A DNA stretch of 61,790 nt from assembly GCA_904063045.1 (NCBI GenBank), contig CAJFCJ010000124.1, positions 27,233 through 89,022 of the forward strand, read 5' to 3'. The stretch is from Dimorphilus gyrociliatus (Eukaryota > Animalia > Annelida). A program made the translations under genes and the position numbers. Below the pieces are notes generated by a model. That model saw nothing but the letters and a program-made list of their open reading frames with translations, did not search any database and was not told the DNA's origin. Numbering within the stretch: position 1 is the stretch's first letter; each line of letters opens with the position of its first letter. Shown piece after piece: positions 31,026-53,632 of this stretch.

Positions 31026-32261
31026 CTATTCCCTTTCCAGTTCGTCTGCATTAACGATTGGACTACCGTCCGCCTCACTCCACTCTTTCCAGCCACCGTC
31101 GTAGATCGAGATGCTCTTCCATCCCAGCGCGTAGGCGTAGAACCATATTTCGGACGCCCTCCACCCAGTACCGCAATAGAACGAGTTGGAATCATTTGCA
31201 GTAATGCCGTTATTCGCCCACCGATTAACGATATAGTGAAAGTTTATCATTGTATTATCCGGAGTTCTATAATCCGACATATCCCAAGGATCCAGACCCG
31301 CAAATCCGTGAACGGCGCCCTTAATATGGCCAGATTTTTTAATATAGCTATAACCGCTAGTTTGGCCAGTGTACTCGGGCCAACTGCAAATGCTTATGAG
31401 GCGTCCATTCTCTTCCGAGAGTAGTTTTTTCACATCTTCCAAATCGATTATATATTCGGGATGTTGAGGTATTCGAACGCCGAAATCGGAAATGGGCGTT
31501 ACTTGCTGGTCGCCTCCTTCTAACTCGTATAAAGCGTCTCTCCACGCAACGAAACCGCCGTCTAAAATGCGAACGTCTTCAACTCCGGCATATTTCATAA
31601 TTAGTCCTATGCGGCAGGCTGCGGTTGTATCGTCGCTGTACAAAACAACCTTTGCCGATCGGTTAATGCCGTAGAAGAGAAGAGATTGAAGAATATCTTG
31701 ATCATTTTTCCTATTCCACAAAGGACCTTCTTCAAAACGATCCGTGTTTAGATGAACAGCCGTAGGAATATGACCCTGTCTGTAAGATTCTCCTTCTCCC
31801 TGGCTAACTTCGAATATTCTAATATCTCTCTTATCCTTTATCATCAACTCGTTCCTTATCCAGAAGGGAGGAACGAGAACTCGATAATTGGGTAAGATTT
31901 CCATTTCTAGAGAGTCGTCCGCCGACCAACCTTCGATACCTTCGCCGTAGACCTTGACACTTTTATAGCCCAAATTTTCAAGTTTGTCAGCAACGTAGCG
32001 AGCCGTTTGAACGCTGTGGCCATAGGTTACTATGGTTTTTTGCTTAACAATAGAATAACGGTCAAGTTCCAATTGTACCGACTCTTCCTCGTCGGATAGT
32101 TTGTCAAACCAGGTTGACGAGAAAACGGTTGACCCTTTAATGTGACCTCTACGAATGTTTGCCCTCGTTGTCCAGCCATTAAATTCGTACGTTGGACGAG
32201 TATCGACAATAATCGTACTAGGATCATTTAGCAGTTTTTTTAGTTCATTCGTGCTGAGCAT
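31026..32261 (-). CDS. ynjE-like: Three-domain rhodanese / thiosulfate sulfurtransferase, YnjE type (411 aa, intronless)
   Basis: Rhodanese motifs IVDTRP..GHIKGS, Y..GHIPTAVHL, VRILDGGFVAW, SGHIKGA. Catalytic loop FYCGTGWRASE in the third domain. C-terminal SIYDGGWKEWS signature. One uninterrupted 1236-bp ORF. Confidence 0.9.
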   Translation of the reverse strand: MLSTNELKKLLNDPSTIIVDTRPTYEFNGWTTRANIRRGHIKGSTVFSSTWFDKLSDEEESVQLELDRYSIVKQKTIVTYGHSVQTARYVADKLENLGYKSVKVYGEGIEGWSADDSLEMEILPNYRVLVPPFWIRNELMIKDKRDIRIFEVSQGEGESYRQGHIPTAVHLNTDRFEEGPLWNRKNDQDILQSLLFYGINRSAKVVLYSDDTTAACRIGLIMKYAGVEDVRILDGGFVAWRDALYELEGGDQQVTPISDFGVRIPQHPEYIIDLEDVKKLLSEENGRLISICSWPEYTGQTSGYSYIKKSGHIKGAVHGFAGLDPWDMSDYRTPDNTMINFHYIVNRWANNGITANDSNSFYCGTGWRASEIWFYAYALGWKSISIYDGGWKEWSEADGSPIVNADELERE

Positions 32262-35312: not shown

Positions 35313-35394
35313 GCAGTCGTGGCCGAGTGGTTAAGGCGATAGACTAGAAATCTATTGGGCTCTGCCCGCACAGGTTCGAATCCTGTCGACTGCG
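35313..35394 (+). tRNA. tRNA-Ser-AGA: tRNA-Ser (anticodon AGA)
   Basis: GCAGTCGTGGCCGAGTGGTTAAGGCG; anticodon arm ATAGA-CT-AGA-AA-TCTAT; long variable arm; GGTTCGAATCC; acceptor stem closes; 82 nt. Confidence 0.95.
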
Positions 35395-35479
35395 CAAAAT
35401 TTTCCTTTTTTCTTTAATTTTTCTTCTTTTGCAAACAATCAGAGTTTGTCATACAGAGAGAGAGAAAGAGAGAGAAAGA

Positions 35480-36235
35480 GCGTCCTTTTGACAATTACCA
35501 GCTCCTTCAAGTCAGCTGAGCAACAGATGGATTTCAACAACGTAAACACATTCTTCTAACAAAGATTGTGCAAGATTGAAAACATGCCGAATAATAATCC
35601 GATTGAAATTCAAAGAAAGCTCCAACATCTAACACTCCAATATCATCCCAATTACATGTTCATCTATTTAAAATGGAAAGGTCAAGGACGGCGGCATTCG
35701 TTTCTTCATCGTACGGAATACGATCGATTAGTGGACGAAATGGACGTATCCGTCAATGAGATCATCTCCATTTGTAATAGCTATTGCTATCCTACGAAAA
35801 TTCTCCTTTTAGCTGATCTTATTAGTCCGGGTAGTTCTTTCTTTGCTTTTTTTTTGTAATAGGGAATATTAAGATATGATTGATTGATAAATTATTTCTT
35901 CCCTATTCTTCCAGATTTTATAAATATGAGATACCAGACAACGGGTAAACAAACTAGTGTGCCTTCTCTTCCCGACGGAAGATGCTATATCCAAATTTGC
36001 AATGTGGCAGGTTTGTAAAGAGAGATTTATTTCCAAAGAATTCTTGTTGTTAAAAGCCTCTCTCTTTATAGAAAGTGCGGAACTTTTAACACCACTTCTA
36101 CGCAGTCTCTCAACTGTAATTGAAGCCTACAATGGCAACTCGTTAACTGATCTTCTTGATCTAGTTACTCAAGGTGTGGAGGACATTCACATGGCATTTT
36201 GCGGAAACTGGTTGTCAGGGCCAGTTAGCCTGTAA
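35480..36235 (+). pseudogene. Caspase-fold family A copy 1, 5'-truncated pseudogene
   Basis: Homologous to A2-A4 with the same two introns. Lacks the start region (fused to a GA tract after the tRNA) and has an in-frame TAA at 35557-35559. Confidence 0.75.
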
Positions 36236-36269
36236 GGAAAAGAGAGTTCTTACAATCATACTATCCCCG

Positions 36270-37640
36270 CCAACAAGCTGAATGAACGAAGAAGAACTAT
36301 AGCGAGAGATGCAACGGATATAAGCCGGATAACCCTGCCCGAATGAGTTTCACTCATTTCGTTCGTCTACCACTGGGCCCGTATAATTAATGGCCACCAC
36401 GAAACGACTAGTTTTGGTCATGTGCCCAAGTTGAAGACTCCAACATGTTAACTAACGTTATACTTGTAAACGCGGTGTTACTATTTGAAAAACCTCAGTT
36501 CAGAGACTGAAGATTTTATCATTCGTTCTAGGCTATTTTATCCATATCACATCTGCCCAAAAAATAACTATATACACTTTTTATACGAAATACATTAATT
36601 ACATTTTTATTTGATCTTTGTCAAATAGATATTTCACTTATCAAAGCATCTTTCATTCCTTCATACTGGTGTTTTATAAAATCAGGGTTAGGGTTAGGGT
36701 TAGGGTTACGAATTTCATTCACTTTTCCTTTTGAAATAACCCTATAAATTCTCAATGGGATCAACATCTGGTGAATTACCGAGATCATTCTCCTCCTGCC
36801 TCAACCTCATAAAGTTCTCACCAAATTTCTCCCTAAATATTGGAAAAATTGTTCCGTGGATTCGGCGTTGGGGTTAGGGTTAACCATATATGCATATTTT
36901 TGTCGGCACCTTTATGCTAGATGAACTTACTTGAGTTAAGCTTCTTCATTATCCGAATATATCGGAAAAAGGAGAAGGAGACGACGAGTTTGCCGGAGAA
37001 AGAATGTTCAACATATGCGGAAAGAATTTCATTCTCTTTTCAGAGTAGTTTCAAGAGTGGAAGACGCCAGCCTTCATAAACATTCGGTGTTCAAATTAAC
37101 TCAGAAGAAGAAGAAAAAGAAGAAGAAGAAGAAGAAGAAGAGAAAAAACTGTAATGAAAGTTACTTTAGCTATTTGGTCAAGAATCCAATGGTTAAGCGC
37201 TATTTTAAGGATAACGACTAGATTTATCACAAAACACTCTCTACCTCTCTTCCTTCAAACACAACGAACGAAGAAGAATTGAAGAAGATAATATAGAATC
37301 ATTCGCTTACCGTAAATTCCGTAAAAAGGCGGCTTAAACAGCTAGAGGAGAAATGATTTCAACTGTTGAGACGAGTTTCCCAAATGTTTGGTTAGTCAAC
37401 AATGATTAAGCGTTTTCCGGGAGACGATGAGAAAGAAAAGGCCGTTAGTTCAATTATGTCCTCGAAGAATTCTTTAAAGAGACAGAATTGTTATGTAAGT
37501 CTGTATTGCTTCATTACGCCGAAGGATTTTGTTGAGTTTAAACAAAAAATGACTCTTTCATTAGTCATAATTTCATTATGATGGCAATCAATCCATAATG
37601 TTGCAGTAATAACATACAGTGTATATTTCATTGTATATTG
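36270..37640. repeat. Segmental duplicate block (unit 1); near-identical to 46830-48125, diverged partial copy at ~40400-41400
   Basis: Line-by-line sequence identity visible, e.g. aatgaacgaagaagaactat..ggataaccctgcccgaatgagtttcac..gagatatttatc. Confidence 0.9.
36685..36882 (-). mobile_element. Tc1/mariner (DDE_3-like) transposase fragment flanked by (TTAGGG)4 and (TTAGGG)2
   Basis: Minus-strand translation NSPDVDPIENL*GYFKRK matches the Tc1 motif SPDLNPIENLWxxLKRK. Confidence 0.6.
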
Positions 37641-37664
37641 AGATATTTATCTAGCTCAAATTCC

Positions 37665-37980
37665 TGAAGCTAGCAATGGATTAGATTAGACACAAAAACA
37701 AACAATGTTAATCGATCATATTTTGTTTATTAATTCATTCATTTATTCATGCCTTCCTTCCTTCACCCATCCATCCAGTGAAAAAGATAGACGACACAGA
37801 GAGTGCGACATTTCCCTGCAACAACCTCTACAAAAGTGATGTGTGCGACGCTCTACAACAATGATTTTTACTCAACAGTCTACTGAATGAAATGACTGCC
37901 GACGTCCAATATGTTAACGATACGGTTGATGCCGCTTTAATAAACGCCAATAGACCCAAATCATTGATAATGGATTATCT
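37665..37980 (+). pseudogene. Caspase-fold family C 3' fragment (pseudogene)
   Basis: Matches gene C from EATNG through its last exon (44540-44850), with a premature TGA and indels; the 5' part is missing. Confidence 0.7.
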
Positions 37981-38035
37981 TTTAAAAAAAATTTAATCAT
38001 CATGAAAGATATTATTTATTAATTGCATTCTGTTA

Positions 38036-39134
38036 TTACATATAAGCCAACTTTCGGAGAGTGTCGAAAACAATTGGAACGTTTCTACTATTATAGTTTT
38101 CTCCCAACGTCTCTTCGAGATTCCGTTTACATTCCCACATGATCTTTTTCATGTTTAATCCTCTATTTTCCGTCAACGCTCTCAGATAATTCTCTGTGAA
38201 GCACGATCCATCCTCGTTATCCGTCCTCTCCATTGCATCTGTTTAGAGAGAGAGAGAGAGAGAAATGATTAAAGAGAAAAGAAAATCCGTCATTCATGTA
38301 CCGTTCGCCGTAGCGTAGACAATATAGAAATGAAGATGATTATCTTTCTCATTCGACAATAGTCGAAAGATATTGTTGAATTGGCAAAGCGTTTCCTTTC
38401 GGACATCGTCTGCTGGATTAGGAAGATATTAAGAAAGATAACTTTGGAGCGGATATACTCTTGTTCGAATAGTTAACCTTTATTATTTCCGATAACGAAG
38501 AAACACTTCAAGGAGGAGAAAAGGGTAGAGGAGAGAAAGTTGATAAACAGTTCATTTAGCGGAACGTCAACAACGCCATCTTGTTTATTGCAGTAAATTC
38601 TGAATGAATGATTACAGTAATTGGATAGAAGGATACACCAAATAGGACGTTGCCTATTCTTCCATTGTTGACACATACGTTGTTTGCTGTCCAAAAACGA
38701 TTTCAGAGTTTGCAAATGCCTGCAAACTCTACAAAAATACAAATAATTGTAGGAATGGAAAAATTTTTCCCATTTTCTCATATCGTTTAGCATGGACTGA
38801 GTTTGGTTTGCGGAAGCTCCTTCGTTATTCATTATTACAATTCCAATACCATTATAATGTTCCACCTATTTAGATAAGTGAAAATGGTTGCCAAACAGTT
38901 GTTTGTTTATGAAAAAAAAACAAAACTTACAGTATCGACATGATAGGATTGGTCGTCTTCCCAGTTGTCCTTTTCCAAAACATTGGTATGTTCAACCTTT
39001 TCAGAATCTTCATACCGGGAAATATTCTCCTTACATATAAAAGGAATACAATTGGTAATTTCTGTTGTAGAACCATCATGGATTGCGCGTTCTGGTTTAA
39101 CTATTGCGATATTGATAAATTCCTCATTACCCAT
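38036..39134 (-). CDS. Caspase-fold protein B1, catalytically inactive (about 4 coding exons, acidic N-terminal region)
   Basis: p20-like GIGIVIMNNE..DMRKWEKFFHSYNY..IWCILLSNY..DGVVDVPLNELF..KCFFVIGNNK. p10-like HLHFYIVYATANG|DAMERTDNEDGSCFTENYLRAL..VFDTLRKLAYM*. The SHG and QACRG positions read SNY and IGNNK. Confidence 0.8.
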
Positions 39135-39492
39135 GTTTTCTATGTGAGAAGAAGAAAGAAGCAAAGTTACAATCCTGACTTGTAATCGTACAAGTGTATA
39201 AGATTAGCCGGAACGATATTGTGACTAAAAGATAAGATTCACCCCTGATGGTTATATCAAGTGGTGGTTGTTAATCTTATAAACTCATAATAACCATAAG
39301 TAAACACTCATCCCTAACCCTAACCCTAACCTATTTTACTCATGGTAAATGATTTAGAGAATTTTCATGAATATATGTTAGAAAAAAAACAAGAAAAGAA
39401 CTACTATACTGTATTTTCACAAATTTATTACTTTAAATGAAATATTTTTAATCCTGAGGGAGAGAGAGTGACGCAGCACTATTCACTTCAAG

Positions 39493-40092
39493 ATGGAGAC
39501 TTCTCCCGAACCGTCCGATATTAACACGCTACAGAGAATCAGGAAGAGCGTCTTTTTGACAATTGCCAACACCAACGATTTAACTGACCACCAGGGAGGA
39601 TTTTTCCACAAAGTAAACACGTTCTTTGGCCAAAGATTGTGGAAGATAGAAAGAATAACCAATAATAATCCGATTGAAATTCGAGGAAGGCTGCAAAGCC
39701 TCTCACTACAGTGTGATCTCGACTACATACTCATCTACTTAATATCGAAAGGAAAAGGTCGGCATGCGTTTCTTTATGGTACGGAAGACGATCGATCAAT
39801 CGACGAGATGGACGTATCCGTCAATGAGATTATCTCCGTCTGTAATGGATTTTCTCGTAATGGAATTCTGCTATTAGCTGATCTTATTAATCCAGGTATT
39901 TCTTTCTAAGATATCATTGATTGATTGATTGATTGATAAATGATTTTTCCGTATTCTCCCAGATTTTATAAATATGAGATACCAGACAACGGGTAAACAA
40001 ATTAGTATACCTTCTCTTCCCGACGGAAGATGCTATATCCAAATATGCAATGTTGCAGGTTAGTAAAGAGAGATTTTTTTTGCAGTTCGTAA

Positions 40093-40135
<43 letters not shown>

Positions 40136-40300
40136 ATAGAATGTAGTCGCCGTACACCACTTTTACGTAGTCTTGCAACTGCAACTGAAACGTACAATGG
40201 AGATTCGTTAACTGATCTTCTTGATCAAGTTGCCCAAAATGTGGAGGTCGATGATATGACATTAGGCGAAAACTGGTTATTACAGCCAGTTAATCTATAA
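39493..40300 (+). CDS. Caspase-fold protein A2, catalytically inactive (3 exons)
   Basis: KSVFLTIAN (beta1), DYILIYLISKG (SHG becomes SKG), DVSVNEII, ILLLADLIN (QACRG lost). p10-like IPSLPDG..TPLLRSL..DSLTDLLDQVAQNV. Stop at 40298-40300. Confidence 0.75.
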
Positions 40301-40663
40301 GCTAACCACGATCTAAAAAGTCCAAAATAAGTTTGGTGATTGAGACGACTTAAGAAGGTCAACACTTAAGCTCGATTTGTGCCGTAGAACTATGCAGCCT
40401 GCCCAATGAGTCGCATTTTGTTTCTCTTCCCTTGGCCGTGTAATTGGCCAGGGATAGATGACTTGCCAAATGTCATATAACCTTATATGTTTATCAGAAT
40501 AAATGAGCGATTGTCATGTAAATAAACCTTAATTAAGACTGAATACTTCGTTCAATGCTATTTTATCTATATCACATCTACTCAAAACAAGTAATACATT
40601 AATTACATGTTTATTTGATCCTACTTATCTTTCATTCCCGCATACAGCTGCTTTATAAAATCA

Positions 40664-40848
40664 GGGTTAGGGTTACGAATTTCGTACACTTTTCGTTCGA
40701 AATAAGCCTATAAATTCTCAATGGAGTTAACGTCTGGTGAATTACGGAGATGATTCTCCTGCTGCCGGAGCCTCATCAAGTTTTCACCAAATTTCTCCTA
40801 AAATATTGGAAAAATTGTTCCGTGGATTCGGTATTGGGGTTAGGGTTA
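40664..40848 (-). mobile_element. Tc1/mariner fragment copy 2, flanked by (TTAGGG)2 on each side
   Basis: NSPDVNSIENL*AYFERKVY; paralog of 36685-36882. Confidence 0.6.
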
Positions 40849-41419
40849 ACCATATATCGATATTTTTGTCGGTAAATTTATGTATATGTATGTAAGTAGT
40901 TTGAAGAGTGGAAGGCGGATGTCTTCATAAACATTCGGTGTTCAAATTAACTCAGAAGAAGAAGAAAAAGAAGAAGAAGAAGAAGAGAAGAAACTGTAAT
41001 GAAAGTTACTTTAGCTATTTGGTCAAGAATCCAATGGTTAAGCGCTATTTTAAGGATAACGACTAGATTTATCACAAAACACTCTCTACCTCTCTTCCTT
41101 CAAACACAACGAACGAAGAAGAATTGAAGAAGATAATATAGAATCATTCGCTTACCGTAAATTCCGTAAAAAGGCGGCTTAAACAGCTAGAGGAGAAATG
41201 ATTTCAACTGTTGAGACGAGTTTCCCAAATGTTTGGTTAGTCAACAATGATTAAGCGTTTTCCGGGAGACGATGAGAAAGAAAAGGCCGTTAGTTCAATT
41301 ATGTCCTCGAAGAATTCTTTAAAGAGACTGATCCCATAGTCAGTTTCGAATTGTTATGTAAATCTGTATTGCGTCATTATGCGGTGAGATTTCATTCATT
41401 TAATCATAAAATAACCCTT

Positions 41420-41670
41420 TCAATATTTCGGTTCGCTTCCCCATATCATCCGCTTTCACGTCTGTTTAATCCTCTATCTTCCGTCAATTTTCTCACTTAA
41501 TCTAGTAATAGACAGACACAGAGAGAGAGATGATTAAATAGAAAAGAAGATCTGTCATTACCGCTCGCCGTACCATAGACAATATAGAAATGAAGATGAT
41601 TATCTTTCTCGTTCAACAATAGTCGAAAGATATCGTTGAATTGCCAAAGCGTTTCATCTCGGACGTCTCC
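41420..41670 (-). pseudogene. Caspase-fold family B p10 fragment
   Basis: Matches B1 exon 38300-38410 (..HLHFYIVYG) and part of the next exon; the rest is absent. Confidence 0.6.
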
Positions 41671-42012
41671 AACTAAGTATGCTGTCAGGAGAATTCTTCT
41701 ACATTACTCTATACACCTGGTTAGATAGCAAAGGTAGAATCCAGTGCGTAGAGCGGTCGTCTTAGTAATCTTCTAAGTTTGGTAAACTCCTCCTATCGTC
41801 TATACAGTAATTCTCTAAAATACAAATGTAGCGTTTTGTTAGTTTGCCAACAGGGACATCATCCAAGCGGTAAAGCATTTTACTGCATTCGACGAAAGAG
41901 ACGATGGCAAACAATCCTCACGATTAGCCCCAATCAAAAAATAAAATACTATAGTCTATGATAAAAAGGAAAGGAGTGTAATTCCACTTTGAATATACGC
42001 AAAACTTGTATC

Positions 42013-42055
<43 letters not shown>

Positions 42056-42609
42056 GAGATAAAGCAAAAGAGTTAATATCAAAGATACGACAATAGACAA
42101 TATTTGTCGACGGCATTCTAGTATGACGCAAATGTGCTTTTTATCTCTTCCTCTTCTCCTTTATCGGTAATCATTCTCTTATCTCTCCTATTAGTAACTA
42201 CTCTACAGAGTAACGGCAACTAGACAACAAATACACCAAGAATCTCGATCTTTTTACGAGGCGACAAGCAAAACGGATTCCAAATGTTGTCTTTCCGATT
42301 TCCGTTGACAAACAATACAAACTAAATTTTCATCGTATGGACGTTTTGACGCGAAATCTGAGAATTTACACGAATTGTTATGATCTTTGTGAAAAAGGAA
42401 GACTAACAAAATATCCAACTTGAAACTTTAAATGAAAATCTGATATCCGTGTTTGCAAGACGTCGCTCTGCCATTTTAATCCGAGTCGTATCAATTCTAA
42501 TAGACATTTGGCGTCTATCGTTCTACTCTTCACCTACAAACTGTTTTTAAAATATTCTCTTTATTATAATTTTGTTAATAAATCATATGTATCATTCACC
42601 TTAAAGAAG

Positions 42610-42642
<33 letters not shown>

Positions 42643-42751
42643 GGAATGAAAGGGAAAAATAAAGAGGACAACGAGTAGAGAATCAGCAATTAGTTAGGCA
42701 ATAGTGAAGGTTAAGGTAATTAGTAAACAATAGGTAAATTACTTTTTATAA

Positions 42752-42833
42752 GCAGTCGTGGCCGAGTGGTTAAGGCGATAGACTAGAAATCTATTGGGCT
42801 CTGCCCGCACAGGTTCGAATCCTGTCGACTGCG
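42752..42833 (+). tRNA. tRNA-Ser-AGA: tRNA-Ser (anticodon AGA)
   Basis: Identical 82-nt sequence to 35313-35394, and shares about 70 bp of 3' flank. Confidence 0.95.
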
Positions 42834-42890
42834 AAAAATATTCTCTTTTTTCTTTAATTTTTCTTCTTTTGCAAACAATCAAAGTTTGTC

Positions 42891-42960
<70 letters not shown>

Positions 42961-42989
42961 GCAAAACGTATTTTTCTTTCTAGTTTGAT

Positions 42990-44041
42990 TTACATCATGT
43001 GCATATAAAATCTCTGTCGGAGAGTATCGAAAACTACCGGAGTTTGTCCCTCGTAGTAGCTCTCCTTTGCGGTTTCTTTTAAAATCCTTTTAGTTTCCCA
43101 CATAATCTGCTTTAAATCCATCTGTGGATTCTCTCCAACAGCTTTCACGTAACTTTGTACAAACCACGATCCATTTTCGTCTCCAAGACAATCGAAACCT
43201 AAAAGAAGATGAAGAATGGAGAATGAAGAAAGAGAAGAGAAAAATCTTACCCGGTTCTGTACTGAAAACTATGTAAATGTCGGGTGAATCTTGCAGTGTT
43301 GTTATCTCTCGAGTAAGTTGATTGAAGAGCGAAAGAGTAGAGATTGTTTGTCCTTGTTGTTGATATTTTCCGATGATAAAGAAACTCATTAAATCGAAAT
43401 GTACTCTACGATACGACAATATATCTCGAATACTTAAAACAATTGATATGGAAGAATTGTTTGGCATTTCCAACGAGATTGTCCTCAAATCCGACATATC
43501 CACAATGAAGTAAACAAATATTGATCTTCTTGTCTTTCGTTTGCCATCGTCGTTGTAGACTGAGTGTAAAAACTTTCTAATCTCTTCATGATTAGGATTT
43601 CGAAGAAATTCTACTTTGTAGTGAAGACTCTTCATCAGTTTTTGCAGTAGGTTTAGATCACATTCAGTTTGTCGTGTAACGAAAGCGCCGGTCGCTACAA
43701 ACAAGATAAACAGACAAATTGCTTCATTCGGACAGGTAGAATTCGATGTAGTAGTTGTCGGAGCATCCTGTGGTGGTGTAGAGCCTAAAGAATAGAATGA
43801 CCAATCAAGACAAAAGATGACGACGACGACGAATCATTTTAAAAGCGTTTCTTTCCGCTGCTTACCTTTTCTTTCGCCCTGGAAACTGATTAACAAATAC
43901 AAGATATTGGAATGGATTAAAATTGAAAAGAATAAACAAGATATGAATTAAAAGATAAGGTAAGAAAACTTACATAAAGGGCATGATGTCTTGATGATTA
44001 ATCTTTCCGCAAAAGTGAAAATAGGATTGCCCTCTAACCAT
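42990..44041 (-). CDS. Caspase-fold protein B2, catalytically inactive (4 exons)
   Basis: Exons 44041-43974, a ~20-nt microexon near 43865-43885, ~43780-43250 and ~43200-42990 splice in frame. Motifs AICLFILFV, DLNLLQKLMKSLHYKVEF, SIFVYFIVDM (no His), MSFFIIGKY (no Cys), DIYIVFSTEPG, canonical p10 GSWFVQ, TPVVFDTLRQ. Confidence 0.8.
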
Positions 44042-44047
44042 ATACAC

Positions 44048-44066
44048 ATATAACCAGAGGTTATAT
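44048..44066. promoter_or_regulatory. Perfect palindrome ATATAACC-aga-GGTTATAT between the divergent starts of B2 and C; candidate bidirectional core element
   Basis: 8-bp inverted repeat with a 3-nt spacer and TATA-like on both strands, inside the 59-bp gap between the two predicted ATGs. Function is inferred. Confidence 0.4.
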
Positions 44067-44100
44067 AACGTACTACTTAATTTTTTCACTAATTGACCGG

Positions 44101-44864
44101 ATGTGCCAGGTGCAAAACGAGGTAGGATGATAATCATTGCATTTCCCCTTTTCTTCTTCTTCTTCTACTAGTAATACTACTACTACTACTACTACTTCTT
44201 TAGTTTCAAATTCTGGCCAATTCAAAGTGCTTTGTGCGAGTATTCAATACAGCGGAGAACCGTGAAGATCGTGAAAATGACGATCAATTAAAGATGATAC
44301 AGATGGAAGAGTATTTAACGGAGAAAATGTGGATAGCGGTAAGTTTGAAGAATAAATCTCGTTCGACGATCGAAAGCTCGTTTACCAGTTTATCTTTATC
44401 CAATCCGCAATGCGTGGTTGCCTACATTAATTCGGCAATGGATAACGGCGGAATACGTTGTCGTGAAGGAGGCCTACTAAACGTGAATACTGCTATCCAA
44501 CTCCTTCGAAGACATTCTCAATATCCTCTATTTTTTATTATGGAAGCTACCAATGGATTAGGTTAGACACAAAAACAAACAAACACTCACAATGTTAATA
44601 TTGTTCCTATTCCATTCATTCATTCATTAATATTCCTTCATTCATCCAGCGAACAACGGAGACGACACAGAGAGTGAGACGTTTCCCTGCAGCAACCTTT
44701 ACAAAGTGGTGTGCGACGGCCGGCAACAATCATTTTTACTCAACAGTCTACTGAATGAAATGACTGCCGACGTCCAATACGTTAACGATATGATTGACGC
44801 GGCAATAATAAACGCCAACAGAGCATTGACAATGGATAATCTTTCAGATAAAGTGTTAATTTGA
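44101..44864 (+). CDS. Caspase-fold protein C, catalytically inactive (3 exons)
   Basis: MCQVQNE, intron 44122-44203, then FQILANSKCFVRVFN..QCVVAYINSA (no His)..GGLLNVNTAIQLL..PLFFIMEATNG (QACRG becomes EATNG), intron, then ..QSFLLNSLLNEM..VNDMIDAA..*. Confidence 0.7.
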
Positions 44865-44939
44865 CTACAATACATCATCCATAGCAAATTGTTGAAAAAG
44901 AAAAGCATTTTAGAGCTTTAGTTTGTTTTTTTTTATCAT

Positions 44940-45529
44940 AAATAATCCAACTTTTTCGGAGGGTGTCGAAAACAATTGGAACGTTTCTACTATTGTAGTT
45001 TTCTCCCAACGTCTCTTCGAGATTCCGTTTGCAAAAAATCCCTGCAAACTCTACCAAAATACAAATAATTGTAGGAATGGAAAAATTTTTCCCATTTTCT
45101 CATATCGTTTAGCATGGGCTGAGTTTGATTGGGGGAAGTTCCATCATTAATCCCTATTACAATTGCAATACCTGTCTGTTCTGCCTATAACGATAACACT
45201 GTTAATGGTTTGCCTGCCAGTTTTTTATGGAAAAATGAAAAGACAAAACTTACGGTATCAACACAACAGAATTGGTCGTCATTGCTGTTGTCCTCTTTCA
45301 AAGGATTCAATAGTTCAGTATCTTCTTTCTTTTCAGGATAGTCAAACCACAGAACATCATTTTCAGTTCTACTTAGAAATTGACAATCAGCTACTTTGAA
45401 TGAAAAAGCATCATCATCAGGTTGTTGTTGTTGTTGTTGTATATCAGCTTCTATTCCTTTAACCCTAACCCTGTTAATATATTCCTCATTTCCCATATTT
45501 TCGTCAGATTCAAAAGACCAGTCAACCAT
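44940..45529 (-). pseudogene. Caspase-fold family B copy 3 with an internal frameshifting deletion
   Basis: Acidic N-terminus with a poly-Q run and GIAIVIGIN..DMRKWEKFFHSYNY, joined directly and out of frame to the end of p10 (NLEETLGENY..TLRK) at about 45030. Confidence 0.75.
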
Positions 45530-45751
45530 CAATTATATGTTAGGTTACTAGTTGACATTTACCATTATCACATCCGGTTAATCGATGGTTTTAAGTAAAA
45601 TCCTGTGTGTATAAGCAGTGCTTTTCAGACATTAAACAGTTGACAAACACAATAGCGTTCACTTTTTCTTATCTCAATCTTATCATCCCATAATTAAGAT
45701 AAGATTGAGATTTTTGAATCTGACGAATAACATAGCACTATCCATTTCAAG

Positions 45752-46385
45752 ATGCAGGCTTTCTTCCATCCATTGGATGTTATACCGATAGGCAGAATGA
45801 GGAAGGGCGTCTTTTTGACAATTGCTAATCCCTCCGAGTTAAGTGAAAAACAGACAGGATATTGCAACATCGTAAACTCGTTCTTCGAGGAGAGATTGTC
45901 CGAAATTGTTAACATCCCAAATAATCATCCAACCGAAATCCGAAGAAACCTTCAAAATCTAACAGTCCAATATCATCCCGATTACTTGCTCGTCTACTTA
46001 AAGTGGAAAGGAAAAGGGCAGCACACGTATCTTTATGGAACAGAACACGATCGATTAATCGACGAAATGGACGTATCTGTCAATGAGATCATCTCCATTT
46101 GTAATAGCTATTGCAATCCTACCAATATTCTCCTATTAGCCGATCTTATTAGTCCAGGTAGTTCTTTCTTTGCTTTTTTTTTTATAATAGGGCCTCTTAA
46201 GATATGATTGCTGATTGATAAATAATTTCTTCCGTATTCTTCCAGATTTCATCAATATGGGCTATAGGATGACGGGTAAACAAACATGTGTGCCTTCTCT
46301 TCCCGACGGAAGATGCTATATCCAAATTTGCAATGTGGCAGGTTTGTAAAGAGAGATTTATTTCCAAAGAATTCTTGTTATTGTA

Positions 46386-46418
<33 letters not shown>

Positions 46419-46586
46419 ATAGAAAGTGCGGAACTTTTAACACCACTTCTACGTGGTCTTTCAACTACAATTGAAACGTACAACGGAGAATCGCTAACTG
46501 ATCTTCTTGACCAAGTTACTCAAGGTGTGGAGGACAATCACTTGACATTTAGTGGAAACTGGTTGTCAGGGCCAGTTAGCCTGTAA
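45752..46586 (+). CDS. Caspase-fold protein A3, catalytically inactive (3 exons)
   Basis: RKGVFLTIAN, DYLLVYLKWKG, ILLLADLISP; same intron positions as A2; stop at 46584-46586. Confidence 0.75.
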
Positions 46587-47244
46587 GGAAAGAGAGTTCT
46601 TACGATCAGGTTTCAACTCAGGTATCCCACGATGTATATATATACAGTATATACCGTATAAGCAGTATACTTAGTCAATTATCACAATGACTAGTGTTTG
46701 CGAGATGCCAAGTTTAAGCTGGTACATCTTTACGTCACATTGGGAAAGGAAGAACAATTACGAGAAATAAAAACAGGCCGCCATTCGATTTATGCTATAT
46801 AATTACAAACTAAGGTCATATTACCCCAGCCAACAAGATCAATGAACGAAGAAGAACTATACGGAGAGATGCAACGGATATAAGCCGGATAACCCTGCCC
46901 GAATGAGTTTCACTCATTTCGTTCGTCTACCACTGGGCCCGTATAATTAATGGCCACCACGAAACGACTAGTTTTGGTCATGTGCCCAAGTTGAAGACTC
47001 CAACATGTTAACTAACGTTATACTTGTAAACGCGGTGTTACTATTTGAAAAACCTCAGTTCAGAGACTGAAGATTTTATCATTCGTTCTAGGCTATTTTA
47101 TCCATATCACATCTACCCAAGAAATAACTATATACACTTTTTATACGAAATACATTAATTACATTTTTATTTGATCTTTGTCAAATAGATATTTCACTTA
47201 TCAAAGCATCTTTCATTCCTTCATACTGGTGTTTTATAAAATCA

Positions 47245-47448
47245 GGGTTAGGGTTAGGGTTAGGGTTAGGGTTACGAATTTCATTCACTTTTCCTTTTGA
47301 AATAACCCTATAAATTCTCAATGGGATCAACATCTGGTGAATTACGGAGATCATTCTCCTCCTGCCTCAGCCTCATAAAGTTCTCACCAAATTTCTCCCT
47401 AAATATTGGAAAAATTGTTCCGTGGATTCGGCGTTGGGGTTAGGGTTA
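47245..47448 (-). mobile_element. Tc1/mariner fragment copy 3, flanked by (TTAGGG)5 and (TTAGGG)2
   Basis: Near-identical to 36685-36882 with one extra telomeric unit. Confidence 0.6.
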
Positions 47449-48199
47449 ACCATATATGCATATTTTTGTCGGCACCTTTATATATATGCTAGATGAACTT
47501 ACTTGAGTTAAGCTTCTTCAGTATCGGAATATATCGGAAAAAGGAGAAGGAGACGACGAGTTTGCCGGAGAAAGAATGTTCAACATATGCGGAAAGAATT
47601 TCATTCTCTTTTCAGAGTAGTTTCAAGAGTGGAAGACGCCTGCCTTCATAAACATTCAGTGTTCAAATTAACTCAGAAGAAGAAGAAGAAGAAGAAGAAG
47701 AGATAACGATTAGATTTCTCACAAAACACTCCACCTCTCTTCCTTCAAACACAACGAACGAAGAAGAATTGAAGAAGATAATATTGAATCATTCGCTTAC
47801 CGTAAATTCCGTAAAAAGGCGGCTTAAACAGCTAGATTAGAAATGATTATAACTGTTGAGACGAGTTTCCCAAATCTTTCGTTAGTCAACAATGATTAAG
47901 CGTTTTCCGGGAGACGATGAGAAAGAAAAGGCCGTTAGTTCAATTATGTCCTCGAAGAATTCTTTGAAGAGACAGAATTGTTATGTAAGTCTGTATTTCT
48001 TCATTACGCCGAAGGATTTTGTTGAGTTTAAACAAAAAATGACTCTTTCATTATTCAAAATTTCATCATCATGGCAATCAATCCTTAATGTTGCAGTACT
48101 AACATATATACTTTATTGTATATTGAGATATTTATCATGGTCAAATTCCACTCCTTTGTACGGTATCAAAATTTTGTTGAATGACAAAAACAATCGGTT

Positions 48200-48790
48200 C
48201 GTTTCTCCTTTTAACCCTGATTTAACCAATTCTCTCATCAATATTTTGCTTCGCTTCCCGTATCATCCTTTTTCACGTCTGTTTAATCCTCTATCTTCCG
48301 TCAACGTTCTCAGATAATTTAGTAATAGTAATAGGCAGACAGAGAGAGACAGAGAGAGAGAGAGAGATGATTAAAGAGAAAAGAAAATTTCTCATTACCG
48401 CTCGCCCTACCGTAGACAACATAGAAATGAAGATGATTATCTTTCTCGTTCAACAATAGTCGAAAGATATCGTTGAATTGCCAAGGCGCTTCCTCACGGA
48501 CGTCTTCAACTGGATTGCGTGAATATTGACTGGAATAAGAACGGATTGCTTTCTTTCATAGTGGAGATTAATTCCATCATATTCGATATTCAACGTTTGC
48601 AGCTTTGGAATATGGAAGAGAAAGTGGATAAAGAATTCATAGGAGAAGAATGAGAAGATTTTTCCATTTTTCAACTGTAATTTTCATGGATGGAGTTTCT
48701 CTGGCGAAACTCGTCTATGGATATTTCACTATTAGAACTGCAATACAAGTTTTAATCGTCTAGGAGACTAACGCTGTCCAACATTCTGTC
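48200..48790 (-). pseudogene. Caspase-fold family B copy 4, decayed
   Basis: The HLHFYVVYG exon (48400-48510) matches B1. Upstream are a degenerate CIAVLIV.. and a frameshifted KWK/WEKFF-like segment. Confidence 0.55.
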
Positions 48791-49019
48791 AAATTGTTGT
48801 TAAATAATAGTTCTGCTTATTTACAATTATACTGCTTTGATATCAGGTCATAAATAGATAATCATATAATTTCTCATATTTAAAATCAGGGATAGCTGAA
48901 GTTGAGTCATCGGTTGATATTATCAATCTTAGCACTCGGTGTTTGGATTACGTGTAATACAGTACCGGAGGCAAATGACAAAGAAGCGGCTATCGTGACC
49001 TAGCACTATCCATTTCAAG

Positions 49020-49842
49020 ATGCAGGCTTCCTTCCATCCATTGGATGTTTTACCGTTAGGAAGAAAGAGGAAGGGCGTCTTTTTGACAATTGCTAATCCC
49101 TTCGAGTTAACTGAAGAACAGGGAAGATATTGCAACAACGTAAACTCGTTCTTCCGCCAAAGATTGTGCAAGATTGAAAACATGACGAGTAACGATCCGA
49201 TTGAAATTCAAAGAAAGCTCCAACATCTAACACTCCAATATCATCCCAATTACATGTTCATCTATTTAAAATGGAAAGGTCAAGGACAGCATTCGTTTCT
49301 TTATGGTACTGATTACAATCGTTTAGTGGACGGAATGGACGTATCCGTAAATGAGATCATTTCCATTTGTAACAGGTATTGCAATCCTACCAATATTCTC
49401 CTATTAGCCGATCTTATTAATCCAGGTAGTAGTAGTTCTTTGTTGCTATATTTTTGTAATAGGGGGAATCTTAAGATATGATCAATTGATTGATTGATTG
49501 ATAAATGACTTTTTCCGTATTCTTCCAGATTTCATTAATATGGGCTATAAAATGACGGGTAAACAAAGTAGTATACCTTCTCTTCCCGACGGAAGATGCT
49601 ATATCCAAATTTGCAATGTTGCTGGTGAGTAGAGAGAGATTTTTTTTGCAGTTCGTAATCTCTCTCTCTCTCTCTTTATAGAATGTAGCCGCCGTACACC
49701 ACTTTTACGTAGTCTTTCAACTGCAATTGAAACGTACAATGGAGATTCGTTAACTGATCTTCTTGATCAATTTGCGCAGGATGTGGAAGAAGATTATGAG
49801 ACACTAGGTGGAAACTTATTGTCGCTGCCTGTCCTCTTCTAG
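49020..49842 (+). CDS. Caspase-fold protein A4, catalytically inactive (3 exons)
   Basis: RKGVFLTIAN, NYMFIYLKWKG, ILLLADLINP; same introns; TAG at 49840-49842. Confidence 0.75.
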
Positions 49843-50674
49843 TAGAGGAAGAGAGTTCGTAGAAAGGTGTTGCAAAGGATTTTCTGTAGAATACGAATTA
49901 GGCGGACGAAAGACGCAAGAATGATGCCGATTGATTGGTCAAATTTCTTCATCGGAACCTAGCTAAAAGAGAAGAAAATGATATAAACTATCTGCTAAGT
50001 CTGCTGTCAGGAGAATTCTTCTACGTCATACATCATGTTATATAGCAAAGGTAGAATCATTCAGTGCGTAGCAATCTTCGGAGTTTGGTAAACTTCTCCT
50101 TTATATTGTTTTGTGAATTCAGAAGAATTTCTTAGAAAATAAACATTTATCTTGAAATGTAAACATTTTGTAAACGCTTTCATATTATCGCTACACTTCC
50201 GATGCGGGGTAAAAAAAATGCGGTGTCCATATTTGTTTTGTTCTATCTTTCGAATGTTTCGAAGTAAAAAGTTTCCATCTTTTTAATTCAACTAGAAATT
50301 CCTTGATATCCTCGTTGTATCGATGAAGAGAGGAAAGTTTTTCAATAATCGTAGCCTGAATGGAAGAAGAAGAAGAGACGGAATTTAAAAAGGAAAAATC
50401 TCTGACGAACGAATTATTGAAGAAGATAAAACGGAATCATTCACTTACCGTAAGTAAGGGAAAAAGCCGGCTTAAACTGTTAGAGAAGAAATGATTACAA
50501 CTGTTCAGATGAGTTTGTAAAATCCTCTTCCGGGATTCGATGAGAAAGAAGAAATATCAAAAAACCTTTTCGTCCAATTATGTTCTTAAAGAATTCTTTA
50601 AAGAGACTGTATCCGCCCATTCAACGACTAACGCGTTAACCGCCATTTCAGCACAGCAATTCCTAGAATAAAGT

Positions 50675-50755
50675 GCAGTCGTGGCCGAGTGGTTAAGACA
50701 ATAGACTAGAAATCTATTAGGAAATGCCACCACTGGTTTGAATCCTGTCGATAGA
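50675..50755 (+). pseudogene. tRNA-Ser(AGA) pseudogene
   Basis: The 5' half and anticodon arm match the other two copies. The variable arm, T-loop (GGTTTGAATCC) and 3' acceptor strand are degraded. Confidence 0.8.
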
Positions 50756-51013
50756 AACCCTAATTAATAATTGGACAAGGGTTCCATTTTCTAATGTTTC
50801 TCTTAAAGATTCTCTATGATTGATAAAAAGCGTATTGTTAAATATCTATTTTATTTGAATAATTGATTATTGAAATTTCAACGAGGTTTGTTATTAATTT
50901 ACTGTACTCTATCATAAATTATTTCATTTCTTAAAATATTTAGTTTCTTACCGCAAATTCAATATGTGAAGTTGATCATATCGGTAGTGAATTTACAAAG
51001 CTGTAACTAAAAT

Positions 51014-52870
51014 ATGAATATAAACTATCTTCTTTATCTTCAAATCATCAGTAAGTATGGAGGATTAACAAAAAGTCCTCTTCTTTTTCTATTATAAAAA
51101 ATTCAATATTTTTCAGGTATTTTCTCTATTCCATCAAAATCTACAACAAATTTAGCATTACAAAAGCCCACCTATCAAAGTACTACGTATTTTGACGCTA
51201 GACGACCCTATCCAGCCTACATGGCAGTTGACTTGCCCGTGAAATACGGCACAGTGGCTGATCACTATCATTGTTCTATTGCCAATACAGAGTTAACAAG
51301 ATACAGTTGGTGGACGGTAGATCTGGGAGCTATTTATCAAATACACAACATCTCTGTAGTTAACTGTTGCGAAGACACTTGGGGTAAGTTTTATCATTTT
51401 CATTCATTCATTCATGCTTTCTTTCTTGTATGTTCCATTTGCCTTTTTCTTCCTATTCCTTCTAGCTCATCATACAAAAGACTTTAATATTTATGCGGAA
51501 AAGTTCCCGAATCATGAAGATAAGAAGTATTGCTCAAAACATGTTGGACTTTTACCTCCCGGCTGCAATACGAATCAATACGTAAATTATATTTGTGAAC
51601 CAAACGTCACTGGATCGTTTCTTACACTACGCCAATATGTTACTAATAGTATCTTTAGTTTTTGTGACGTTCAAGTGAACGGAGAGTACATAGAAGACAG
51701 AGGTCAGTTTTCATTCATTAGTTAAAATATGATTTACCATTCTTTCAAATAATCTCTCCTTTCTCTCTCTCTCTTTCTCTCTATCTCTCTCTTTGTCGTT
51801 AAAGATTATACTCTTCTGAATTTGGACGGAATGAGTACTTTCACTGAAGGTACTATCAACAATTTAAAAGATAATGATTTAAGTACAATTTTCAATGCCG
51901 AAAGTTCAACGGAAGTGTTTTTCCGTTTGGATTTTAAGCAAACTATGCAGATATTCGGTCTATTAGTGACAAACACAAAAATGGAATGTAAGTAATATTT
52001 CGAAAATCTCTAGTTGCAAGTTAATCCTATGTCCATTCTTCCTCAGATTTGGAAAAGGATTTTATCAATGTCTATGTATCGATAGATCATAATCCTCACA
52101 CGCTTTTCAATGCCAACAATTCGTTTATCTCGTATAATTTCACATCAGAAGCGGAAAGTAATTGGCCTACTCACACCTTTTTCAATGAAACATCTATCGA
52201 AGGAAGATACTTGCTCGTGAATATTCACAATCCATCTATTCAAAAATCCACTTATAAATTAGCGATTTCCGAATTGGCCATCTATGGTAGGATTGTTAAT
52301 GAACAACGATGTAAGCATAGAATAAGATTATTACTCAGTCGTTAGATTAACGATAATAATCCGCCGTTTTTTAATAGATAATAATCGACGCATAACAAGT
52401 ATTAAAAAGAATGGCGTCGAATTGAAGTCGCTGTTGACCGACAACGTCTATCTAAATGACGGAGTTGGAGATAAAGTAGATATGATTGAAGACGATGAGC
52501 TCATCATCGTTTTAAACGAAAAGACACTGATTGATACCATTTGTATAACATGTTGGTAAAATTACAAACAAAACAATTAATCAAACTATTTAGGTAGAGA
52601 AGGAATAAATTGGAATTTTTAATAATTTCAGCCTTGAATACAGTAAAGACGAACGGATACGTGATTAAGACTGATGATCTGAAAGACGGTGTCCCTATTG
52701 AAAGACAAATCATTTTACACGGAGATTTCGAGACATCGCAAACAAACTGCGCAAAATTTGAAACAATATTCATAAACGGTTTAAAGATCATTTCAAAAAG
52801 TTCTCATTCCGTTAGCGAAATTGATTTGGGCGTTGAACAAGGTTTGTTAATCAGTTCTCTAAGATTTTAA
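51014..52870 (+). CDS. Secreted F-type-lectin (FTP)/discoidin-like multidomain protein, copy 1
   Basis: Short hydrophobic exon 1 (MNINYLLYLQII) then NLALQKPTYQSTT..AVD..HCS..SWWTVDLGAIYQIHNISVVN (FTP signature). Two further galactose-binding-like domains follow (LKDNDLST..FRLDF..EGRYL..ISELAIYG; LTDN..ELII..GLKIIS..VSEIDL). 3' end uncertain. Confidence 0.75.
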
Positions 52871-53632
52871 TCGTATTTTGTCTCTTTTTATCATTACTCA
52901 TATACAAATTTCAAATGAACCGTTTTTCGCAAAAAAAAATCCACAATATTAGCCATTTAGAGACACTTTTTACATAAATTGATAGTAAAGTTTTTGCTAA
53001 TGTAGAATGATGTACATTACACGAAAAATCTTTGAAAGGCAGTTGGTGTTTTTCTACTTAATCCTTTGTTGGAGGTTGATACTAATGATAGAATTCATTG
53101 CTGTTGAGCAATATTGAACTGAATATGACTGAATTATGATTGAAATAGAGAAGATTGCTGGTCAATAGGAAAAATAATTACAAAGACTGGTTGTGTAATA
53201 TCAAAAAACTAACGTAGTTAGGGTAAGGACAAATTTCCAACTATATTCTTTGATTGATGTAAGAGAAGAGAGAAAGAGAAAGCGGGAATAGGTAAGAAGT
53301 GATCTAAATGTCAGAATGAAAACTAATCGAATGAACGATGTACAAATGTGATAATTGTCAAGAAAAACCCGAACAACAAAAAGACAAACAAGTACGTTTA
53401 AAAAATTAGATTCAACGATTAATCTCAATATTCAAATTTTCATTTTTCCACTTTATAACATGTTTTCTTCAGACTTAATTATCTTTATTGATATTGATCA
53501 AACTCGCTTAAAAGCCAACAATAAGATTAGTTTGTCATTTCTAAATTGTTTGCGGTTGATGAGTCAAGTTGTCGGATATGGACATGAAATGTATTCTCTT
53601 TCTTCACATATTCTGTAAGAGGTTTGATAAAG

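Follow-up and report, generated by a model that had tools for sequence, protein, structure and literature searches.

A cluster of caspase-fold genes at 35.5–49.8 kb of a 61,790-nt window (the whole stretch of DNA analyzed, from Dimorphilus gyrociliatus contig CAJFCJ010000124.1) consists entirely of members that lack the catalytic His/Cys dyad. Because the dyad is lost, the genes are paired and the proteins have remained under selection, the products are putative regulators of cell-death proteases that probably act by binding, not cutting. Dyad-less caspases are already known (c-FLIP, CSP-3, CASPS18 and bivalve members); what is new is a paired family devoid of death-fold domains. We regard it as an even call that these are dimer-forming pseudo-caspase regulators, constituting a free-standing, lineage-specific family kept by purifying selection after dyad loss.

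Gene content and paired organization

Six-frame reading with splice-site checks identified six intact genes (A2, A3, A4, B1, C and D), encoding products of 197–301 aa with every intron GT-AG, and five broken copies among the 11 (A1, B2, two B remnants and one D remnant). These counts agree with the initial annotation, which had proposed about six intact and five decayed copies from at least three very divergent subfamilies, and all motifs that it quoted are present in the sequence. Its membership required revision: the B copy at 44.9–45.5 kb (B2), formerly taken as intact, has suffered a deletion, and its place as the sixth intact gene goes to D, whose dyad sites read NSA and EATN; the subfamilies number four (A, B, C and D).

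35313–35395, plus strand: tRNA-Ser(AGA), with further copies at 42752–42833 and (degenerate) 50674–50759
35467–36235, plus strand: A1, A-type pseudo-caspase, broken; 5' end missing, with the break at an AG microsatellite; TAA at 35557–35559
37666–37996, plus strand: D remnant; end of the p20 exon, intron, and last exon with an in-frame TGA
38036–39134, minus strand: B1, intact, 301 aa, 4 exons (39134–38931, 38865–38478, 38412–38302, 38238–38036)
39493–40300, plus strand: A2, intact, 219 aa, 3 exons (39493–39895, 39963–40058, 40140–40300)
41410–41680, minus strand: B remnant; exon 3, followed by the decayed beginning of exon 4
42990–43984, minus strand: C, intact, 257 aa, 4 exons (43984–43974, 43885–43866, 43784–43251, 43198–42990)
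43985–44100, no strand: C/D start-codon spacer, 116 bp; candidate shared promoter
44101–44864, plus strand: D, intact, 197 aa, 3 exons (44101–44121, 44204–44561, 44650–44864)
44933–45496, minus strand: B2, broken; ~575 bp deleted at about 45030, frameshift
45752–46586, plus strand: A3, intact, 221 aa, 3 exons (45752–46157, 46246–46341, 46423–46586)
48179–48516, minus strand: B remnant (exons 3–4), upstream of A4 on the opposite strand
49020–49842, plus strand: A4, intact, 220 aa, 3 exons (49020–49425, 49529–49624, 49682–49842)

An alternative upstream ATG at 44041 would extend C to 276 aa, and the B2 deletion is flanked by short TG.AAAC repeats (microhomologies). The tRNA-Ser(AGA) copies punctuate the array and were duplicated along with it. 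A fifth subfamily suspected in a repeated spacer (~37.2, 41.1, 47.8 and 50.5 kb) did not score above background and was discarded.

The array is laid out in head-to-head pairs, each combining one B/C-type with one A/D-type gene. The opposed ATGs are separated by 358 bp in B1/A2 and 255 bp in B2/A3, and the shorter C/D spacer harbors an inverted repeat at 44048–44066 (8-bp arms, 3-nt loop) and a 10-bp TATA-like palindrome at 44060–44069. Two further dyad-less B-type genes were located on unlinked contigs (G000:C46 and G000:C99, hereafter C46 and C99). The C99 gene faces a divergent, partly seen D-like caspase-fold neighbor head to head at 112–172 bp, bringing the family from at least eight intact-looking genes to nine. 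As C46 has no recognizable partner within 870 bp upstream and the ratio of A genes to intact B genes is 3:1, strict one-to-one pairing has not been maintained. Kinship between A and D is not significant by BLAST and relies on exon layout and a shared C-terminal end point. Neither the two-lineage layout nor its recurrence on other contigs featured in the initial annotation.

Evidence for the caspase fold

Sequence searches and folding were carried out exon by exon. C gave PF00656 matches on two exons, each at E ~5e-4 and narrowly missing the Pfam cut-off, with A, B and D left open by this search; against p20 and p10 HMMs built from the genome's own caspases, C ranked top of 776 window frames (E 1e-6 and 1e-5). 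Atlas, which compares language-model features, returned PF00656 as the top match for both B (0.94) and A (0.91), with Raptor_N among the weaker A matches (0.84, a lead only). The B p10 is 48% identical to that of C, the A profile aligned in register by hhalign (P 0.08), and D was supported by hhalign (P 0.002) and by intron position: a phase-1 intron two codons past the Cys position is shared by B1, D, C46 and C99 and by the active caspases L007, L013 and L020. Searching PDB sequences with C exon 3 gave no match.

Structure prediction for A4 exon 1 yielded a model of pLDDT 74 whose top six VIA matches are caspase p20 chains (Z 8–10). Since its alignment contained caspases, the model is partly circular and shows compatibility with the caspase fold only; Foldseek was not discriminating, ranking unrelated SphA chains level with caspases, and AlphaFold on A exon 1 from the four A rows alone reached pLDDT 41. 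Overall, evidence for the fold is strong for C and B and moderate for A and D, and a p20 part, for which the order beta1-alphaA-beta2-alphaB-beta3-alphaC-beta4 is expected, was recognized in all four subfamilies. The caspase fold originally proposed for the array is supported by Pfam (C), Atlas (A and B), the alignment of profiles and intron positions in common with active caspases.

The p10 region (beta5, the GSxF helix and, at the C terminus, the dimer strand) is clear in C, B1, C46 and C99. In the p10 alignment the B/C types keep the complete dimer strand and C-terminal motif (QxPVVxDT..xFY-like), whereas A/D chains appear to end halfway along this strand; p10 support is accordingly weaker for A and D, being alignment-only with a chain apparently ending mid-strand.

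As initially noted, no CARD or DED was found. The leader exons of B1 (68 residues, acidic) and B2 have no Pfam match, and the 116–358 bp between opposed start codons leave no room for a death-fold exon, although such an exon may lie further upstream. The former description of the family as prodomain-less thus holds in the sense of no death-fold prodomain, since B1 does have its acidic leader.

Loss of the catalytic dyad and degradation of the S1 pocket

Dyad columns were read from a 22-row alignment that included the genome's own caspases. The His column holds K (A), N (B1), M (C; Asp instead if shifted by one) or A (D), in the contexts W-K-G (A4), S-N-Y (B1), V-D-M-S (C) and S-A-M (D); the Cys column holds L (A), N (B1), Y (C) or T (D), within A-D-L-I-N (A4), I-G-N-N-K (B1), G-K-Y-Q (C) and E-A-T-N (D). 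Both the (S/T/A)HG His and the QxCxG Cys of active caspases are therefore absent from all subfamilies, as the initial annotation had stated for every member. An alternative His/Cys pair, which it had named as evidence against its reading, was not shared across subfamilies: in this alignment, no two of them have a His or Cys in common near either catalytic column. The C46 and C99 genes read S-D-N at the His site and I-G-N-R-K at the Cys site, giving an I-G-N-x-K motif conserved at the former active site of three B genes. The S1 pocket is also degraded, with its first Arg (Arg64-equivalent) kept in C and D only, its Gln replaced in all subfamilies (by Glu in D) and the p10 Arg not clearly kept.

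Purifying selection, turnover and age

The A copies showed dN/dS of 0.42–0.50 (bootstrap upper limits 0.63–0.73), well below neutral simulations at the locally measured kappa of ~2 (median ~0.85, 2.5% limit 0.55–0.59), in which 0 of 400 pairs stayed free of stops and frameshifts. C46 versus C99 gave 0.28 (0.18–0.41) at dS 0.60. B1 versus B2 was uninformative. The ratios obtained indicate that the open reading frames have been kept by selection, in line with the check proposed at the outset. The ratios report the past, because the dead A1 shows a similarly low value.

Dyad loss is old, given that synonymous sites are saturated between B1 and C and between B1 and C46/C99. Branches of 3–5 changes per site prevent the p20 tree from placing the array, and a single clade for it is neither shown nor rejected (p-AU 0.33). 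The A copies are exon-by-exon mosaics, which together with the five broken copies bears out the birth-and-death evolution suggested earlier.

Putative role and alternative readings

Under the regulator model, each pair would be co-transcribed from its short shared spacer, and the proteins would act via the caspase dimer surface instead of the active site, possibly as a B/C plus A/D heterodimer. Their most likely job would be tuning the genome's ~15–20 catalytically intact caspases by heterodimerization, as do c-FLIP(L) and CASPS18, either by inhibition or by enhancement and with no adaptor platform to recruit them. The cluster itself keeps being remodeled by tandem duplication, gene conversion at the scale of exons, and loss. 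Potential partners exist, as ~15 distinct loci elsewhere in the genome keep His-Gly; further dyad-damaged caspase loci are present as well. Divergence of 3–5 changes per site counts against a caspase-binding role, exceeding expectation for a protein that binds conserved caspases. A more specific proposal, which we hold to be rather unlikely, is that the co-regulated head-to-head pair of anciently diverged lineages forms an obligate heterodimer of two dead chains with no catalytic partner, the full dimer strand of B/C and the truncated strand of A/D together making a binding or signaling unit; no such pseudo-caspase heterodimer is described in the literature found.

The foremost alternative, likewise rather unlikely, is that the proteins have left caspase control and serve, singly or as B/C plus A/D heterodimers, as peptide- or protein-binding scaffolds. 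The caspase-like N-terminal domain of Raptor is such a scaffold, and the Raptor_N lead for A, the extreme divergence from all caspases, residues newly conserved where the active site once was and the conserved pairing of two types are all consistent with this. However, a ligand lacks positive evidence, and all of the characterized animal pseudo-caspases found act on caspases (PMC7586951, PMC4840389, PMC4715348).

It seems doubtful that the array supplies decoys which sequester the caspase inhibitors or effector proteins of pathogens and diversify in host–pathogen conflict. Fast turnover, mosaic A copies and a moderate dN/dS of 0.4–0.5 would suit such a function, but substrate-like inhibitors of the p35 and CrmA type bind the caspase active site, whereas the S1 pocket is degraded here, and no dN/dS above 1 was obtained among intact genes.

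We give still less credence to an array now decaying, in which once-functional genes survive as six open frames that are recent or unexpressed relics. Breakage of 5 of 11 copies and the low dN/dS of the dead A1 point that way, as does the search record. The only sequencing run listed as containing the stretch is not recorded as RNA, and none of the proteins was found in the public protein collections searched; when C exon 3, A4 exon 1 and the p20 exon of C46 served as queries, word-based searches of proteins 0.55–1.75 times the query length returned nothing, the query itself included. Against decay, the six genes and the two elsewhere keep frames, starts, stops and splice sites at dS from 0.4 to saturation, with neutral survival below 1 in 400 per pair, and even under decay selection would have acted long on dyad-less proteins. 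A four-subfamily profile search matched a WD40 protein and a low-complexity repeat protein, both rejected as repeat-driven chance.

Continued proteolysis via relocated residues is highly improbable: B1 reads S-N-Y-C-N-H, a His five residues past the site is invariant in four A copies and D has Thr at the Cys position, but nothing of the kind is common to subfamilies, the C46 and C99 genes lack the Cys of B1, and in A types the nucleophile position is occupied by none of Cys, Ser and Thr.

Relation to known pseudo-caspases

The regulator model draws on several precedents. In vertebrate c-FLIP(L) (CFLAR), a caspase fold without the dyad, Arg and Tyr replace both residues (PMC7586951), and gene C likewise has Tyr at the Cys position; c-FLIP(L) acts by heterodimerizing with an active caspase, the same action as proposed for the array proteins. 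Unlike c-FLIP, which has two DEDs, is a single gene beside CASP8/CASP10 and is recruited to the DISC, the array has no death fold, comprises at least eight or nine genes and adjoins no active caspase in the window. C. elegans CSP-2 and CSP-3 also lack a death-fold prodomain and are reported inhibitors of CED-3 zymogen activation, although the csp-3 anti-apoptotic phenotype was not reproduced (PMC3591282); CSP-3 is without the active-site region and CSP-2 keeps VCCRG, whereas the array genes encode full p20 plus p10. In Acropora caspase-X, an inactive domain without His and Cys, modeled to pair via strand beta-6, dampens an active domain (PMC4715348); there both domains lie on one chain, while the inactive domains here are separate genes.

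Duplication-born homologues are a further parallel. CASPS18 of Aedes aegypti and other dipteran caspase-like decoys are inactive, short-prodomain homologues of this kind, and CASPS18 is cited as an enhancer of its paralogue CASPS19 (in PMC4840389 and PMC3141678). These homologues are close paralogues of an active caspase; the array has no active close paralogue, each of its pairs consists of two dead members, and it has diverged much further.

Bivalves provide lophotrochozoan tandem expansions in which several members are substituted at His or Cys. A dyad residue is altered or absent in about 11 of the 47 Mytilus coruscus caspases (PMC10967218), and several oyster (Crassostrea gigas) caspases are dyad-mutated (PMC7836458). 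Going by the cited sections of these reports, such members are readily recognized as caspase-2/9 or -3/6/7 and are mixed with active genes, and there is no description of a cluster made up wholly of dead members, of paired genes or of a test for selection. With these numbers and the further loci in this genome, the earlier statement that pseudo-caspases usually occur as one or two genes was too strong.

Most known animal pseudo-caspases are either single genes, each associated with one active paralogue, or dyad mutants in bivalve gene lists. Here, in a genome known for shrinking, a whole death-fold-less family of at least eight intact-looking members has been under selection since losing catalysis. 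It escapes standard searches, with one of the six window genes approaching the Pfam cut-off and none present in the protein sets searched. As small, single-domain, paired proteins, its members would allow one to test directly whether the caspase dimer surface can by itself be a selected function, and would also show which partners that surface chooses.

Array organization

The array comprises six complete genes in four subfamilies, A–D (at least three in the initial annotation). Six-frame translation and splice-site checks gave each an ATG, GT-AG introns of 52–103 bp in consistent phases and a stop:

39493-40300, plus strand: A2, 219 aa
45752-46586, plus strand: A3, 221 aa
49020-49842, plus strand: A4, 220 aa
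39134-38036, minus strand: B1, 301 aa
43984-42990, minus strand: C, 257 aa
44101-44864, plus strand: D, 197 aa

Five copies are broken: A1 (5′ end gone, in-frame TAA), B2 (frameshifted, with ~575 bp deleted between microhomologies) and three remnants, two of them from B and one from D. The gene counts and motifs first reported hold, except that the B copy at 45 kb, taken as intact, is dead and D is the sixth intact gene.

Divergent pairs make up the array: B1 with A2, C with D, B2 with A3, and a remnant of B ahead of A4. The C–D spacer contains an inverted repeat together with a palindrome resembling a TATA element. A–D kinship was not significant by BLAST. The pairs are probably descendants of one ancestral pair and hence not independent events; what counts as evidence is that they have persisted over saturated synonymous divergence. 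Each pair may share a promoter and be co-expressed. The D. gyrociliatus genome is described as lacking operons and trans-splicing (PMC7854359).

Two repeats are restricted to the array. One (36256-37129, 40547-40888, 46816-47701) contains short TTAGGG runs and has no Pfam match. One of its minus-strand frames resembles the SPDLNPIENLW motif of Tc1 transposases, as a candidate only. The other (37044-37664, 40895-41425, 47702-48149, 50405-50614) carries splice-donor-like sites on the minus strand and is possibly a decayed gene; its caspase score was not above background.

Caspase fold and catalytic site

The caspase fold proposed initially is supported by several lines of evidence, with all searches and folds run on single exons. 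Two separate exons of C each match Pfam Peptidase_C14 (E ~5e-4, just below cut-off), and C ranks first of the 776 frames of the window against HMMs for p20 and p10 (E 1e-6 and 1e-5) made from other caspases of the same genome. The p10 regions of B1 and C are 48% identical (E 3e-22), and the best Atlas feature matches of the A4 and B1 p20 exons are Peptidase_C14 clusters (0.91 and 0.94). Caspase-profile alignment gave P 0.002 for D and P 0.08 for A, with the strand-3 motif in register in both. A phase-1 intron two codons past the Cys position in B1 and D exactly matches that of the active caspases L007, L013 and L020, providing independent support. AlphaFold modeled A4 exon 1 with pLDDT 74 from an alignment including caspases, and the top six VIA matches were caspase p20 chains (Z 8.1–10.1); without the caspase rows the model failed, and the prediction indicates compatibility with the fold only.

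As initially claimed, every subfamily has lost the dyad. In a 22-row alignment, the His column carries Lys (A), Asn (B1), Met (C; Asp with a one-residue shift) and Ala (D), and the Cys column Leu (A; Asn if shifted two residues), Asn (B1), Tyr (C) and Thr (D). The leader exons revealed no death fold and opposed start codons lie 116–358 bp apart, consistent with the reported lack of a CARD/DED-like prodomain. The array genes are predicted pseudo-caspases, outside active caspases and outside c-FLIP; a p20 tree could not place them.

Dyad-less caspases occur within expanded bivalve families (PMC10967218, PMC7836458), so dyad loss itself is not new. What is new is an all-dead, death-fold-less and very divergent family kept as head-to-head, two-type pairs at unlinked loci.

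Selection and copy turnover

Among A2, A3 and A4, Nei-Gojobori dN/dS is 0.42–0.50 at dS 0.38–0.52. Because this method is biased below 1, neutral divergence was simulated; at kappa ~2, the ts/tv value measured in duplicated non-coding stretches of the array, the neutral median is ~0.85 (2.5% limit 0.55–0.59). The frames were maintained by past purifying selection. Whatever the kappa, every one of 400 simulated neutral pairs acquired a stop or frameshift; at kappa 8, dN/dS alone is not significant and frame survival still is. Nearest neighbors vary by exon (A1–A4 in exon 1, A1–A2 in exon 2, A1–A3 and A2–A4 in exon 3), a mosaic of the kind that gene conversion or unequal crossing-over would leave.

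Relatives elsewhere in the genome

Searching the 77.9 Mb assembly (349 contigs) with the C p10 exon disclosed two further genes; the related features are:

L082:871-1692 (G000:C46 ~270.6-271.4 kb), plus strand: B-type gene, from the genome search
L083:1501-2400 (G000:C99 ~66.0-66.9 kb), minus strand: B-type gene, from the genome search
L083:2474-3192 (G000:C99 from 66928), plus strand: D-like caspase-fold partner of the C99 gene, head to head, 112-172 bp apart
G000:C106:52097-52174: a further fragment

Both B-type genes are dyad-less (His site S-D-N, Cys site I-G-N-R-K) and carry the same two phase-1 introns. They are 65–77% identical, and their dN/dS of 0.28 (0.18–0.41) at dS 0.60 is the cleanest evidence that selection acted once catalysis had been lost. 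The layout of the C99 partner resembles that of D: a tiny first exon is followed by a phase-0 intron, the p20 exon and a phase-1 intron, with the last exon beyond the sequence covered. This partner has a caspase-like profile score (P ~0.002; E 2e-5 against a mixed HMM as a single comparison), no Pfam match and, in our alignment, Tyr at both catalytic positions. Upstream of the C46 gene, no partner is visible within 870 bp.

The genome holds ~30 PF00656 matches and ~15 distinct loci with His-Gly. His, Cys or both are replaced at L004 (G000:C12:2118231-2118800), L010 (C70), L026–L028 (C34, three identical copies) and L066 (C339), with sites S-Y-G/QAC, G-H-G/QSY, A-D-G/QVH and S-Q-G/QNH. Protein searches found no relative outside this genome; since the sequences are highly divergent and the searches were blank even for self, this speaks to annotation and search sensitivity more than to true absence.

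Proposed role

Caspases dimerize through strand β6. The C-terminal dimer strand is kept in the B/C types, and A and D seem, depending on the alignment, to stop just past its Pro-Val. The proteins would act through the caspase dimer surface. Given this biology and the precedents of c-FLIP(L) (heterodimer-based regulation; PMC7586951), coral caspase-X (modeled pairing through strand β6; PMC4715348) and CASPS18 (caspase regulation, as cited in PMC4840389), the most likely role, to which we give an even chance, would be to tune the active caspases of the worm by forming heterodimers with them.

A caspase-independent scaffold, or a heterodimer of two dead members, is the foremost alternative and rather unlikely. 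A decoy for microbial inhibitors is less plausible still, because the S1 pocket is degraded: the S1 Gln is substituted in A, B1, C and D alike, and the first S1 Arg is kept only in C and D. The dead A1 has a dN/dS similar to that of intact A copies, so the ratio reports history and not necessarily the present; that the array is now decaying is nevertheless improbable. Relocated catalysis is very improbable, and in the 22-row alignment no two subfamilies have in common a His or Cys close to the catalytic columns.

Neighboring genes

Several tandem LDLa-LRR-7TM (GRL101-like) receptor genes occupy 151-30339, as read from ORF translations. An intronless gene at 31026-32261 (minus strand), GC-richer than its left flank, encodes a 411-aa protein in which Pfam recognizes three rhodanese domains (E 8e-47). 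Genes for claudin-like membrane proteins with four helices lie on the plus strand at 34.2–34.9 kb (weak Claudin_3 match) and 57.0–59.8 kb. The plus-strand genes at 51164-52903 and 53716-55675 are a recent tandem duplicate (94–98% identical) resembling, by reading, F-type/F5-8 lectins.
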